Shown here: piece by piece, positions 44,870-50,525 of the stretch
Layout: each line of letters starts with the position of its first letter
Position numbering within the stretch: the stretch's first letter is position 1
NCBI GenBank assembly: GCA_029953675.1
Contig: JAMWBK010000008.1
Coordinates: forward strand, 1,488,001 to 1,552,000
Direction of reading: 5' to 3'
Length of the DNA: 64,000 bases
Source of the DNA: Rhodosorus marinus CCMP1338
Lineage: Eukaryota; Plantae; Rhodophyta
Made by a program: the position numbers and the translations under genes
Notes under the pieces: generated by a model
The model's input: the letters and a program-made list of their open reading frames with translations, nothing else
What the model was told of the DNA's origin: nothing
Databases searched by the model: none

Positions 44870-45242
44870 TGCGCTGTTTTAAAGAATACTAATCAAATCT
44901 GTTATTCTTCCATCTTGTTTCAGTCGCCTTGGTTCCAACTTGTCTTCTCAGTACTACCGCAAGCTCATGCTCACATCACCGTTCCCGTCCCCACCGAACG
45001 TGTGGGGATAAGAGCTGGGATGGTGGAGGTAGGTGAACAGTATTGATCCATGGTTTCAAGCTATCTAAACAGACCTGATGATGTGTAATGTTTCTAGGAC
45101 AGACTAGATGGGACTCTTTGTTCAGACGAAAAGCTTTGACAATGAAAAACGGGGAAGGATAAAGGCACTGCAAGCGAAGTGCCTTGAAGAGTGAATGTCG
45201 GATCGCGCTCCGTTCAGGCTTCTGCTCAGACTGACCGCTTGT

Positions 45243-45600
45243 TCAGATGTGGACCCCAACGTCGTCTTTGAAATGATCCTGTGTGCGTGTTTCGTAGGAG
45301 GCCAACGAAAGATGGGGTTTCTCTCTGCTGAGCCAATTACCCTTCTGCAGCTTTTCGGTCGGATCTACTGACGACTCGTCCTCGAAAAAAAGGCTGTTGG
45401 ATGGGTACTGATCGCGTGAAGCAGCGGAATTGACTGCAGAAGTCAGCTGTTCTGTCATGTTTCACCGACGTGAATGTACCGGCGCACGAGTTGGCAGAGG
45501 TCTGATGCGGAGTCAGTGTCAAGGAGTGCCCAGCCCAGACCTGGAAAAGGTAGCGGGGTTATCGGGGGTATCGGGGGCCTGCAACGGGGAATTTTCAAAA
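45243..45600 (-). CDS. Possible small unknown gene between NUP93 and the divergent promoter
   Basis: ORF MTEQLTSAVNSAASRDQYPSNSLFFEDE... and an upstream MGRELDVVVEDRNFENS.... A C/A-rich leader at 45820-45880 indicates a minus-strand start. No family recognised. Confidence 0.3.
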
Positions 45601-46286
45601 TTCCGATCTTCAACTACCACGTCCAGCTCTCTTCCCATCCAATTATTCTACAGAGCGAGATAGTCGTTGCCTAGGACACCACAGCAAGCAGAATGCTCTC
45701 AATCCGCCAAGTATTGTTGTTGCTCACCACGGACTGGGGGGCGGGGAGGGAAGGGGGGTAGTAGAGAGAGTGCAATCCTCTGGGAGCACTCGGGTGAACC
45801 AATTTCAACGTTCGAACCCCAAAGCTCCCACCCCAACTCGCTCTCACCTCAAAAATGTCTCACAATAAATTTCACTTAACAAAGATAGTCAGTCAACTAC
45901 AATAGTAATATTTTAATCATATGCGTATTCAGTCAATAAAATACATATTTTATTCGTAAATAGAGTTCTATATAGACTGACTTGAAATTTGTTTTAGAGA
46001 TTCGTTGTTGACGTTCTTTTCTTGATCGAGTGTTTCACGTCAAGCGTGGTTGATTGGAAACTCTTCGTTATTGTGGGGAAGCGATTCACGTCAGGAGATA
46101 TGACAGAGGACGCGTTCTGTTTTGGCCATTTGGTGAATGGGAGAACAAAATCTGTCCGGATGGATAGAAGGTGAGTTACGTCGGAGGTGATGACGTAGGA
46201 CGTGATGGCGTTGGAAGTTGTTTTGGTTTTGAGGTAGTTGAGGAGAGATTTTGGAGGGAGAGAGTGGGGGGGGGGGGGGGAGGAGG

Positions 46287-46598
46287 ATGGGGACTTTTAT
46301 GAAGAAGCTTTGGGCGGATTCGAAGAGTTTGGTAATCAGGGAGCTGAAATTCTACAAGGGAAAACTTGACGATTTCCATAAGGATCCGGAGAAGTGGATT
46401 GTTCCAAAGTCCTTGCGAGGATTTGGGTTTGATTATCACTGGATAGAGAGGAAGTACGCCGAAAACAAAACGGGCGAGAAGACGTCGAGAACGATTAAGG
46501 GGCTTAAGGATCAGGAGACCCAAGAAGCCCTTGGATCGTTTTATACCGCTGAGAAGAATCGTCCAAAGTTCTACAAGTTTAACCGAAAGAGGAAATGA
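46287..46598 (+). CDS. 103-aa unknown basic protein whose stop overlaps the RFT1 start codon
   Basis: ATG 46287 to TGA 46596-46598; the RFT1 ATG is at 46595 (ATGA overlap). Coding-like composition; preceded by a G/T-rich leader. Confidence 0.6.
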   Translation: MGTFMKKLWADSKSLVIRELKFYKGKLDDFHKDPEKWIVPKSLRGFGFDYHWIERKYAENKTGEKTSRTIKGLKDQETQEALGSFYTAEKNRPKFYKFNRKRK

Positions 46599-48672
46599 GC
46601 GAGCAGGTGATTGAGAGCGCGGCAAAGGGCCTCGGATCCTCAGTCGCGCTCCAGATCGCTTCTAAGCTCGTGACCTTCGGAATGAGAGTGATTATTATAA
46701 GGCTGCTGGGACCTCAGCTCTTTGCGTTTTCCGAGGTGTGCAGTGCTCTCCTGTCGATTGGCTGCGCGGTGTCCCGCGGGAGCTTGAAGCGTCGTACGGT
46801 ACCTGAATCCAGCCCCGTTCAATTCCTCGTAGGTCCAGATGTCGCTGATGATCTCGTTAGTTCTACTTCCAGCCAGAGAGGGTCTCCGCAGGATTGCCAT
46901 ACGAGAAGAGACTGATCTTCAATCGCGTCTGCTCGCGACAAGCGGAACGTTTCTCTCCGTCCTGCTGGCGCTTTTCACTGCAATTTTCAACTCCTTTTTC
47001 TACAAGGACGTACAATCAACTGCGATGGTAAACATCGTTGAAATTCGTAGCACGATGCGAAACACATCGACTTGCTGAATTTGCCGAGACTGCGTCAGGT
47101 TCTCTCCAGTGTAGCTGCCGCCGTTGAGAGTTTTTCAGAACCCGCGGTGGTGAATGCAACTCGGAGGGAATTGTACAAGGCAATATCCACTATACGAGCA
47201 GTTGCCCTGATCAGCAGTAGTGCGGTTGGAGTGGTATCGGTCTACATGCTACCTCAATCCCAAGGAGTCTACTCGATCATTCTCTCCAATTTGACGTATG
47301 GACGAAGAGCAAACCTTAATTACAGGCGAGGCCTTATGTCTCATTTCTCTCAAAACCAATGCTCTTCTTTAGACACGCCCTCGTACTCGTCGTCGGCCTA
47401 ACCAGCACCAGCGGGGGCGTCTCAGACGTGTTTAGTATCGGCATACCAAACTCTGAAGTGATTCGGCTTGCATTTGACGCAGTCGTGCAGTCCGTGATGA
47501 AGTTCGTGCTAGGTAGTCTCCAGCCAAGCTCGCACAGGCGTGCAAGACTACAGCGCGAGTTGCTGACCAGCCTTGTTTCTTGTACTAGGGAACGGGGAAG
47601 GTTTTATCCTCCTGCTTAGCTGCGACGAAACCTCCCGAGGCGCGTATAAGCTGGCAAGCAACATATCATCCCTTGCGGCTAGGTTTGTCTTTGATAGACT
47701 GGAGGAACAGAGCTTTGCTGCTTTTTCAAGGCTACAAAACGTAATGAACGCGCCGCGCACTGTTGCTTTGCCTCAAGAGCTTTTGAGTTCAGTTTCTGAG
47801 CGGACGGAGACTGTCACCTGTTTAGGACGTCCCCGCGATGGAACGCACGTTTGTCCTAGCGACTAAAACGTCTTCCATGATAGCCATGCTGTTCAGTTTC
47901 ATCGGACCAGCCTATTCGCGGCTTTTTGTGAGGATCATGTACGGTCCCGAGTGGGAAGCAGCCGGAGTTCCGTTCCTCCTGAGCTTGAGTTTTTTTTACC
48001 TTCAATTCATTTCCGTGAACGGAATTGCGGAGGGCTACTTCAATGCTGTTGCGACTTCGAAAGCCGTTCGAGGCTATTCGATGTTCACTTTCATTGTTAT
48101 GATCTTGTATATGGGTACGTGAAGGATGATGTGCCGTACGCATCTCAAGCAGTAGAAGCTCACAGACCAATGCGACTTCGTAGGATTCGGGACGGCCTTT
48201 GCTGTTTACTATGGCCCAGCTGCTATCATCCTGGCCAATGCGTTGAACATGATCTTCAGAGCGGTGTACTGTGCACGGTTCATTGCCAGATTGAATTCTA
48301 AGAAAACAGATCAAACTCGAACGGCTTTGGCCCTGCTGAAAGAGGCGACTCCCACGCTCGGGTTTTTCTTCACTATGGTCGCACTGTCCTTGCTCACGCT
48401 TGGCAGTGAGAGGCTCATGAACGACCAGGTACGCATATAATTTTGAGCTTTTCCGAAGGAGCACAAGAGAACTTCACGATTACGTTCTCAATTTCTTTTC
48501 CGAACGTGTTCTGCATCCGCTCCAGCTCAACCCGGTGCACGTGGGCTTGCATCTTCTAGCAGGGTTCGGCTCCTGTATCGTTGTGCTCGCTGCTGTATTC
48601 AGGTTTGAGAGAATTTTCGTTCAACAAGCGAGGAAAATTTTTCGCGGGGAAATGCCAGCCAAAGAAGACTAG
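46595..48672 (+). CDS. RFT1: Man5GlcNAc2-PP-dolichol translocation protein RFT1, multi-exon
   Basis: LQIASKLVTF...IIRLLG, LPAREGLRRIA, YKLASNISSLAARFVFDRLEE, SVNGIAEGYFNAVA, LANALNMIFR; last exon ends ...MPAKED* at 48672. Confidence 0.93.
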
Positions 48673-49205: not shown

Positions 49206-50525
49206 TCACACGAGGAGAACCCAGATGAACATGAAGACCAGAACCGTCGCGAATACTTTGAGAATCAAAGCTCTGTTACTGGTTAAACTGTTATAATATT
49301 GCATTAACTGCATGTGACCAGCCTGCACGTTCATTTGAGCGTCCTCTACGTTGGCGTCGATTCTTTCCACCATCTCGCCCTGTTCAGCCACCATCGTCGC
49401 GAGTTGGTTGAATATTTGACCTAGTTCTACGATCGTGCTTTCCACTTGCTGGACGGCATCAGCCCGTGCTTGCTGGTAGCCTTGATCTGGCCGTGCTTCC
49501 ATCATGGACAGGGAGAGCGCATTGTTTCGCCGCCCAGATGAGCTCCTCTCCGCCGCCCCCAAAGAGTCAGATCCGAGATCAATTGCAACCGAGTCACCGC
49601 TTGGTGCCTTTGGAGCTCCTGGTAACTGTCTCCTTCTGGGCTCTACCGGAGCCATTTTTGGGGACGGCTTCGTCGCACCCAGGAATTGAGACCGCCGATC
49701 CTGTTGAGCATGAAGCGAGTCTGTTCGCGTTTTTAAGACCTGAAAAAGGCACGGAGTGACGTTAGCAAGCTCACTCAACACAACCAACGGTTGCTGCGCT
49801 TTCCTTTTTCCCAGCGAGTGTTCTCACCTCCTTGAAATCTTGCGTCGTGCTCATCAGCTTTGTCTTCAGCTGATTGACGACATTGGATGTGTGATCCGAA
49901 ACTTGCTTGTTAGTGTTGACCTCGCGCATATGAGAAAGCTCATCCAGCTTTCCATTCAAGGTGGCAATGTCTTGCTTCACCATGAAGGTCAAATCCTGAA
50001 TTTCCTCCGTTGGGTCATCAAATAAAGTACGCCTGCGTAAATCGATGAGGATCATTAGAATCCAGAATTTCTACATGGCCTGGAGAGCAGTTGCAATTAC
50101 CTTTGAGCCAAGCTCGTCAGCTTTTCCAATTTCAGTGACGTGTTCCGAATATCCCTACCAATTGACGCAGCGAGCTGAGACCAACAGGAGGAAGCGGAAG
50201 TCAAGAGCACGCGTGTAAGAAGAAGGTCAACCTGACATTAAACGAATCCTCCTAGCATGTCAAATTTTGCCTGCTTCACTCTCACCTTTGAAAAATCGGA
50301 CTTGGCTCTTTGTCTCTTGTTGACGGCCTGGAGTAGGCAGCGAAGTAAGATTGAGGAATCTTTCTCAGTCGGTAGTGAATCCTCGATTTCAAGACGAAGG
50401 AGAATACCGAACAAATAAAGAAGAAGGAATCTTACCAACGCTGATGACGGAGCTTTCGTTGCTCGGACACTTTCAATAATAGACTGGAACTCAGAAGTCC
50501 GGTTCCTGACTGAAACTCCCGGCAT
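49206..50525 (-). CDS. STX5: Golgi Qa-SNARE syntaxin-5 (Sed5/SYP3), multi-exon
   Basis: N-peptide RNRTSEF; TLFDDPTEEIQDLTFMVKQDI; SNARE motif RADAVQQVESTIVELGQIFNQLATMVAEQGEMVERIDAN; C-terminal TM. Confidence 0.97.

Follow-up and report, generated by a model that had tools for sequence, protein, structure and literature searches.

A conserved orphan reading frame that ends on the RFT1 start codon in the red alga Rhodosorus marinus: a candidate bicistronic nuclear locus

Polycistronic nuclear mRNAs are established in the green algae Chlamydomonas, Chromochloris, and Auxenochlorella (PMC7896298, PMC11291117). In these green-algal bicistrons the first open reading frame (ORF 1) is about 300 nucleotides (nt) long and starts in a weak context, ATG triplets are depleted before ORF 2, stop and start codons occasionally overlap, and the second protein is made by leaky scanning, a route supported by mutational work (PMC11291117). 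Nuclear polycistrony has recently gone from a curiosity to a recognized mode of expression in green algae; among red algae, polycistronic nuclear transcripts have been reported in the Cyanidiophyceae (PMC9812998), and the record comes mainly from these extremophiles. Here we describe a locus in a 64,000-nt stretch of the Rhodosorus marinus CCMP1338 genome assembly (contig JAMWBK010000008.1, positions 1,488,001 to 1,552,000 of the forward strand; hereafter the window), in which a 103-codon reading frame, ORF103, ends on the start codon of RFT1. A first-pass annotation of this DNA had proposed a polycistronic locus and invoked the green-algal precedent; the precedent holds, although the host here is a red alga and not a green one. 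The analysis that follows indicates that ORF103 is a conserved protein-coding gene, and we give about an even chance to the reading in which ORF103 is the first and RFT1 the second cistron of a conserved nuclear bicistron, with RFT1 reached by a scanning-dependent bypass of the ORF103 AUG and an RNA hairpin aiding capture.

ORF103 occupies 46287..46598 (all features are given in window coordinates and lie on the plus strand unless stated otherwise). It follows an in-frame stop at 46239, and its 103 codons are closed by a TGA at 46596-46598; the encoded peptide, which starts MGTFMKKLWADSK and has the C-terminal end NRKRK, agrees with the peptide quoted in the first-pass annotation. The TG of the RFT1 ATG at 46595-46597 doubles as the first two bases of this TGA, forming the tetranucleotide ATGA at 46595..46598; this ATG opens the peptide MSEQVIESAAKG and is the first start codon past a stop in the RFT1 frame. 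The junction, GAAAGAGGAAATGAGCGAGCAGG, is identical in the window and in every other Rhodosorus locus retrieved (L001, L002, L003, L004, and L007, introduced below). An exact-pattern scan for it in JGI metagenome contigs, a set that excludes the MMETSP samples, gave no match. On the two strands of the 64-kb window, 3 of 1684 ATGs (0.18%) overlap as ATGA with an upstream ATG-initiated ORF of at least 100 codons. A mechanical scan returned two other ATGA-overlapping ORF pairs, both on the minus strand (33067-32798/32801-32472, 89 and 109 codons; 22254-21925/21928-21719, 109 and 69 codons), the translations of which have no obvious coding look.

The RFT1 gene (46595..48672) encodes a product of 501 amino acids (aa) in eight exons, 46595-46735, 46833-47027, 47099-47295, 47373-47512, 47589-47740, 47826-48114, 48184-48428, and 48526-48672, separated in the gene model by seven GT-AG introns of 69–97 nt. 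Transcript-derived sequences support the exon 1/2 junction (P0011), the 2/3 junction (L002-L004), the 3/4 junction (L003), and the remaining junctions (P0006). The product scores 208 bits (cut-off 23.8; E = 3.5e-61) against the Pfam family Rft-1 (PF04506), with residues 9-488 aligned to positions 2-509 of the 512 in the profile, so that the match is full-length from the N terminus. Exon 1 alone, corresponding to the first 48 residues, matches Rft-1 from profile position 2 (25.7 bits, E = 6e-6). The earlier proposal that a 103-aa ORF ends in ATGA on the RFT1 start is thus borne out, with the RFT1 ATG at 46595. Of the range given for it, 46287-46720, the start is correct, and the end lies within RFT1 exon 1 (46595-46735).

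The coding status of ORF103 was evaluated with orthologous loci from three further Rhodosorus sequences. L001 is an R. marinus Logan contig, genomic in appearance, that takes in upstream intergenic DNA; L002 and L003 (1147 and 1070 nt) come from JGI 3300017118 (MMETSP Rhodosorus marinus); and L004 and L007, from JGI 3300016967, represent a third Rhodosorus lineage. All carry ORF103 at equal length, with 87% amino acid identity in L001/L002 and 88% in L004/L007. Between the window and R. marinus, ORF103 is 90.9% identical at the nucleotide level with zero gaps, a value in line with the RFT1 exons (88–91%) and above those of the introns (80–82%), the leader (78–81%, with indels), and intergenic DNA (63–64%). 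The leader is considered non-coding because it reaches only 78–81% identity between lineages and carries indels, whereas ORF103 is exon-like in conservation right up to the ATGA; the annotated lack of intergenic space is confirmed in this respect. The ratio of nonsynonymous to synonymous divergence (dN/dS, Nei-Gojobori) for ORF103 is 0.21, 0.34, and 0.25 in the three lineage pairs (binomial p = 2.5e-4, 0.016, and 2.9e-4), compared with 0.93–1.16 in the other two frames of the same DNA and 0.10–0.16 for RFT1. Synonymous divergence (dS) is 0.18–0.35 in ORF103 and 0.25–0.36 in RFT1 exons 1-3. GC content at third codon positions (GC3) is 0.592 for ORF103 in frame and 0.591 for RFT1, as opposed to 0.41 and 0.34 for ORF103 out of frame. 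The constraint is spread over all 103 residues and is not confined to a C-terminal segment. Because of the equal length, the absence of indels, the exon-like identity, the low in-frame dN/dS, and the RFT1-like GC3, ORF103 is, by these sequence measures, a real protein-coding gene for a small orphan protein under purifying selection, restricted to Rhodosorus, with conservation demonstrable only within that genus. The conservation check that had been suggested for this ORF therefore came out in its favor: length, frame, and ATGA are all kept.

The predicted ORF103 protein (12.4 kDa, pI 9.9) is very hydrophilic, with 19 lysines, zero cysteines, and no predicted membrane segment. Its sole clear homologue among 5.8e9 proteins is an uncharacterized 103-aa Rhodosorus marinus protein from an MMETSP transcriptome (87% identity). 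The exact ORF103 sequence of the window has no recorded copy, and the window accordingly represents a Rhodosorus lineage other than the MMETSP strains that were sequenced. There were zero matches to Pfam at E ≤ 1, a profile search of PDB sequences returned one chance match only (E = 1.4), and the 64-kb window holds no ORF103 paralogue. The description of ORF103 as an unrecognized protein is in keeping with this lack of a Pfam, PDB, or extra-Rhodosorus homologue. Two weak matches from a HMMER profile search of 1.84e9 cluster representatives were deemed unreliable: P0002 (E = 1.3e-4), a bacterial surface-layer-type repeat protein, and P0003 (E = 8.5e-4), a long repeat protein without a Pfam domain. 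P0003 is a 1590-aa metagenomic protein in which the motif W-[VI]-[IV]-P-x3-D-x3-FDFSWHP occurs in about 20 copies, and these repeats inflate the E value; ORF103 residues 36-56 (46392-46454), KWIVPKSLRGFGFDYHWIERK, resemble this motif, a likeness that could be due to chance or to a shared module of very distant origin.

The annotation had further predicted a single mRNA covering both ORFs. Four RNA contigs from two samples (L002/L003 and L004/L007) hold ORF103, the ATGA, and RFT1 exons, reaching exon 3 or 4. Intron 2 (47028-47098) is absent from all four of them, and intron 3 is also absent from L003; because of this removal, L002-L004 represent processed RNA and not contaminating DNA. L002 and L003 begin at the equivalent of window position 46186, about 100 nt upstream of the ORF103 AUG. 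One RNA assembly thus spans ORF103 and RFT1, and the two would be co-linear on single molecules. The prediction is upheld insofar as spliced contigs from two samples span both ORFs; these are short-read assemblies, and an additional RFT1-only mRNA starting inside ORF103 is possible.

The first RFT1 intron differs in behavior from the others. Intron 1 (46736..46832, 97 nt) has the 5′ splice site GTGTGC in the window, and GTGTGC or GTGTGT across lineages, whereas the six other RFT1 introns begin GTA. Its retention in the window sequence would truncate RFT1 to 106 aa. MMETSP Transcript_6551 (P0006) is annotated with a “complete” 452-aa product that begins at a methionine in exon 2, implying intron 1 retention, and MMETSP Transcript_19908 (P0011) is spliced from exon 1 to exon 2 exactly as in the gene model. 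In L005, an RFT1 mRNA from outside Rhodosorus described below, the exon 1-exon 2 peptide is continuous. The length of intron 1 also differs between lineages, with two alignment gaps relative to L002, and not by multiples of three. The non-triplet length variation, the spliced P0011, and the continuous L005 peptide together identify intron 1 as genuine. Its atypical 5′ splice site could account for inefficient removal.

Several features of the locus bear on how RFT1 might be translated. Between the ORF103 start and the RFT1 ATG there are no ATGs of any frame in L001, L002, and L004, and the window has one, in frame at codon 5. From the ATG density of the RFT1 coding sequence (CDS), 4.25 internal ATGs would be expected (Poisson P(0) = 0.014, P(≤1) = 0.07), and shuffles of ORF103 give an expectation of 6.5 (P = 0.006); the lack of internal ATGs, taken on its sequence statistics, favors leaky scanning. 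At the RFT1 AUG, the start context is G in position −3 and A in position +4. TURBS-type coupling (TURBS, termination upstream ribosomal binding site) calls for an element complementary to 18S rRNA within about 100 nt before the junction; its motif 1 (UGGGA, TGGGA in DNA), the only motif searched, did not occur among the final 120 nt of the ORF preceding RFT1 in any of the four sequences scanned (window, L002, L004, and L005).

The RFT1 start is also embedded in a very stable predicted RNA hairpin (46583..46680; predicted ΔG −48 kcal/mol), with the AUGA inside the basal stem. About 11 nt separate the A of the RFT1 AUG from the start of the core stem-loop (46605-46660; predicted ΔG −30). The hairpin is more stable than dinucleotide shuffles (z = −3.9) and than synonymous recodings of the RFT1 N-terminal peptide that follow RFT1 codon usage, for which z is −5.4, −3.9, and −5.4 in three lineages, with 0 of 1000 recodings equally stable in each. 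When the same recoding test was applied to 32 windows across the RFT1 CDS, z was −0.01 ± 0.94, and the first window was the sole outlier. Every Rhodosorus lineage preserves the base pairs, with two one-sided changes of the G-C to G-U type; there is no covariation or compensatory change across these lineages, the sequence being almost invariant. The hairpin is absent in L005, and a search of 45600-47200 against Rfam returned no match at E ≤ 1. The recoding results indicate that the hairpin is maintained by selection at synonymous sites. Its modelled geometry would suit a roadblock that holds a 40S subunit, either scanning or post-termination, over the RFT1 AUG; Kozak is reported to have found in 1990 that recognition of an AUG is favored by a hairpin placed roughly 14 nt past it. 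A second structured region lies inside ORF103 at 46467-46566, 30–95 nt before the AUGA (z = −2.8 versus synonymous recoding for 46467-46559), and the pairs of a hairpin at 46531-46566 survive two one-sided changes in L002 and L004.

Beyond Rhodosorus, the nearest RFT1 in the database is P0007, which is 45% identical and derives from MMETSP/JGI sample 3300016877. Its locus, L005, is a 2387-nt, fully spliced mRNA contig with an uninterrupted 506-aa RFT1. The contig holds complete RFT1, preceded by an entire upstream ORF (uORF) of 67 aa, uORF67 (contig positions 56-259), and 55 nt before it. Like ORF103, uORF67 starts with A at −3 and G at +4, and its TGA overlaps the RFT1 ATG as ATGA (AAAAGATGAGCC). 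Its product is basic (pI 10.8), and it contains one internal out-of-frame ATG. Homology between uORF67 and ORF103 is not significant (hhalign E = 0.44, BLASTP E = 0.058). In the window, 12 of 501 ATGA starts (2.4%) have an upstream ORF of at least 60 codons. Because L005 also has an ATGA-overlapping uORF against this 2.4% background, the comparison is suggestive of a uORF-ATGA-RFT1 architecture older than the genus Rhodosorus. Two more distant loci were also inspected. L006 (Logan SRR25760728; RFT1 29% identical) has a 109-aa frame at 302-631 that overlaps, as ATGA, RFT1 at 628-2229; this frame is a probable chance occurrence because it is a Pro/Ala/Arg low-complexity sequence, very GC-rich, with all six frames open. 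L008, a metagenome RFT1 (30% identical), has no overlapping upstream ORF.

Upstream of ORF103, the stretch of 5′ leader covered by the transcript contigs (46186..46286, from the L002/L003 starts) is G-rich. GC skew is +0.49 over 46000-46499, and a G15 tract lies at 46266-46280, 6 nt 5′ of the ORF103 AUG, where a G/T-rich leader had been noted initially. Orthologous leaders are G-rich with no homopolymer at the G15 position; the tract may be an assembly-prone stretch or a piece of a G-quadruplex-prone leader. Two mini-uORFs in the leader, ATGACGTAG at 46190-46198 and a second at 46205-46237, are conserved in L002/L003. Farther upstream, and reaching the 5′ end of the transcript contigs, a cluster of TGACGT/ACGTCA sites (46009..46196, no strand assigned; sites at 46009, 46037, 46088, and 46191) has the ACGT core of basic leucine zipper (bZIP) or cAMP response element (CRE)-like elements. 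The window contains 35 such sites, and this is the only spot with at least three inside 200 nt; two of the four are conserved in R. marinus L001 (888 and 947). Judged by motif and clustering, they may be putative bZIP-type promoter elements.

A block at 45198-45700 is 77% identical to R. marinus L001, compared with 64% in the flanking intergenic DNA. The ORFs tested in this block have no Pfam match, and it may be an exon or untranslated region (UTR) of a divergently transcribed neighbor. Downstream of RFT1, a SNARE/syntaxin-type gene (Pfam SNARE, E = 2e-11) lies on the minus strand at 49206-50055, in convergent orientation.

In the reading that we favor, one capped mRNA, starting about 100 nt or less upstream of 46287, would carry ORF103 and the eight-exon RFT1 CDS. 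Most scanning 40S subunits would start at the ORF103 AUG, since its A−3/G+4 context is a good one by the general rule. RFT1 is a low-abundance membrane protein of the endoplasmic reticulum; its synthesis would fall to a minority of subunits, those that get beyond the ORF103 AUG, whether by leaky scanning or by fresh rescanning after the mini-uORFs of the leader. These subunits would meet no other AUG over the approximately 305 nt before the RFT1 AUG, and the very stable hairpin just downstream would hold them over this start of weaker context. We prefer a leaky-scanning bypass because only scanning accounts for a first cistron that is free of ATGs. We infer from these features that the two ORFs share single molecules, that each is translated, that RFT1 is reached by leaky scanning, and that the hairpin acts in this way. 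Of the initial proposal, a polycistronic locus with leaky scanning or coupled reinitiation, the locus type is supported; both mechanisms are retained, and the lack of ATGs favors leaky scanning.

Several observations weigh against this reading. The transcript contigs, as short-read assemblies, could merge overlapping separate transcripts. Intron 1 is retained in all of the ORF103-bearing RNA contigs (L002, L003, L004, and L007), which truncates RFT1, and no retrieved RNA joins ORF103 to an intact, intron-1-spliced RFT1 frame. In every lineage the ORF103 AUG is flanked by A at −3 and G at +4, a context that is strong by the general Kozak rule, and the leader is about 100 nt in the contigs and not short. 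The ATG depletion is a single-locus statistic (p of about 0.01–0.07) in lineages that are not independent. As for the protein, a HMMER profile search of 1.84e9 cluster representatives found no credible ORF103 homologue outside Rhodosorus, and the AlphaFold2 model consists of helices only at low confidence (predicted local distance difference test score, pLDDT, 46; predicted template modeling score, pTM, 0.25).

Some of these points lead to other accounts of the locus. On the same bicistronic mRNA, RFT1 could be produced by termination-reinitiation, in which a 40S subunit left after the UGA, blocked by the hairpin, restarts on the AUG one base upstream. In its favor, every Rhodosorus lineage has the ATGA overlap unchanged, and L005 has it too, there with a uORF of unrelated sequence. 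The start context, strong by the general rule, would send most ribosomes through ORF103, and the core of the selected hairpin, about 11 nt past the AUG, lies where the front of a ribosome terminating on ORF103 would sit. Eukaryotic reinitiation is nevertheless ordinarily a very inefficient event once an ORF as long as 103 codons has been translated, unless a dedicated element assists, and in no lineage does UGGGA occur within the final 120 nt of ORF103. The ATGA is, moreover, partly fixed by coding, the ATG and the following Ser AGC codon being conserved; loss of internal ATGs is not predicted; and mutational tests in green algae spoke against reinitiation (PMC11291117). We consider this mechanism unlikely, though a serious rival. 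Two overlapping monocistronic transcripts would do without coupling altogether: the RFT1 start site would lie inside or just after ORF103, the ORF103 mRNA would read RFT1 as 3′ UTR, and the assemblers would have merged the two. Co-linearity does come wholly from de novo short-read assemblies, retention of intron 1 in every ORF103-bearing contig is as expected of non-productive RFT1 RNAs, and the intron-1-spliced P0011 is not linked to upstream sequence. This account is quite unlikely in view of the exon-like conservation of ORF103 up to the ATGA, with no intergenic space and no promoter-like divergence, and of the position of the sole TGACGT motif cluster and the G-rich leader, both upstream of ORF103. 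The ORF103 contigs are also spliced at intron 2 (in L003 also at intron 3), reaching well into processed RFT1 RNA; the fully spliced L005 RFT1 mRNA holds an entire upstream ORF and 55 nt before it; and the depletion of ATGs in ORF103 is left unexplained.

ORF103 could alternatively be a long regulatory uORF of the conserved-peptide type that throttles or conditions RFT1 translation in cis, its peptide having no function of its own elsewhere. Its location in the RFT1 5′ leader, the lack of a homologue outside Rhodosorus or of a confident fold, and the conservation in L005 of position and ATGA but not of sequence, typical of uORFs selected for presence and not product, all fit such a role. Purifying selection covers the full 103 residues and not merely a C-terminal stalling segment, however, the length exceeds that usual for conserved-peptide uORFs, and the codon bias equals that of a normal gene; we judge a purely regulatory ORF103 improbable, although a cis-regulatory role is compatible with the bicistronic reading and not exclusive of it. 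A more elaborate scheme, for which our expectation is low, would make the leader, ORF103, and RFT1 a three-tier translational switch with delayed reinitiation akin to GCN4/ATF4, in an architecture older than the genus and shared with the L005 lineage. Ribosomes would translate the mini-uORFs of 2–10 codons (46190, 46205), resume scanning, and then start at ORF103; upon late reacquisition of initiator tRNA they would start at RFT1 instead, which would be reachable because ORF103 is free of ATGs and where the hairpin would capture them. If so, the locus would respond to stress by making less of an orphan protein and more of a lipid-linked-oligosaccharide factor. Finally, ORF103 might be a functionless chance open frame in a purine-rich 5′ UTR, as the G/A-rich leader has few stop codons and the GC-rich L006 has its own 109-aa low-complexity frame ending in ATGA on RFT1. 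The dN/dS of 0.21–0.34 in frame versus about 1 outside it, the absence of indels, the conserved stop position, the coding-type GC3, and the 0.18% of window ATGs with such an ORF leave this explanation with a very slight probability, and it is effectively excluded.

As a bicistronic locus with scanning-dependent bypass, ORF103-RFT1 would be a compact natural substrate for separating leaky scanning from termination-reinitiation outside the green lineage. Automated annotation misses ORF103, and the MMETSP ORF calls include an RFT1 product from an internal methionine owing to intron 1 retention; the practical value of the locus lies in improved red-algal gene models and in design rules for two-gene expression cassettes. 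No paper tying RFT1 to a bicistronic arrangement was found in the literature.

The closest likeness is to the green-algal bicistrons. The locus shares with them a short ORF 1 (312 nt here; published medians 291–357 nt) before a normal-sized ORF 2 on one mRNA, a minimal inter-ORF distance (some Auxenochlorella loci also overlap stop and start), depletion of ATG 3-mers before ORF 2, and conservation of both ORFs. In contrast to those systems, Rhodosorus is a red alga (Stylonematophyceae), its ORF 1 AUG is strong by the generic rule (A−3/G+4) where theirs are weak, its leader is about 100 nt with mini-uORFs, and just past its ORF 2 AUG lies a very stable hairpin under selection. Nuclear polycistrony in Rhodophyta, in the sense of transcripts covering at least two same-strand genes, is shared with the Cyanidiophyceae, where the cases come from extremophilic, intron-poor species and were recognized by how Iso-Seq reads cover the annotated genes (PMC9812998). 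Rhodosorus, by comparison, is mesophilic and intron-rich, its upstream cistron is a small orphan, the cistrons overlap by 4 nt, and the arrangement is known here from short-read contigs.

Overlaps of this kind are also familiar from viral termination-reinitiation junctions, with AUGA in victoriviruses and some caliciviruses and UAAUG in influenza B segment 7. There, too, the stop codon of a long upstream ORF overlaps the next start by 1–4 nt with RNA structure nearby; ORF103-RFT1 differs in being a cellular nuclear gene with no TURBS UGGGA found, in having the structure downstream of the junction rather than upstream, and in an ATG depletion that points to scanning. Among cellular genes, plant conserved-peptide uORFs, plant CDC26/TTM3, the human MIEF1 microprotein, and human PYURF(PreY)/PIGY, the last also in a glycolipid pathway, are likewise cases in which the leader of a conserved gene contains an upstream ORF whose peptide is under selection. 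They bear no sequence relationship to ORF103, whose 103 aa and whole-length constraint better suit a free-standing protein; in conserved-peptide uORFs the peptide is kept across distant taxa, whereas conservation of ORF103 was demonstrable only within the genus. The locus would be an added red-algal case of the already described algal genes that yield two proteins per mRNA and not a new principle, and its unusual details are the ORF 1 context, strong by the general rule, the hairpin selected at synonymous sites at the ORF 2 start, and the habitual retention of the first ORF 2 intron.

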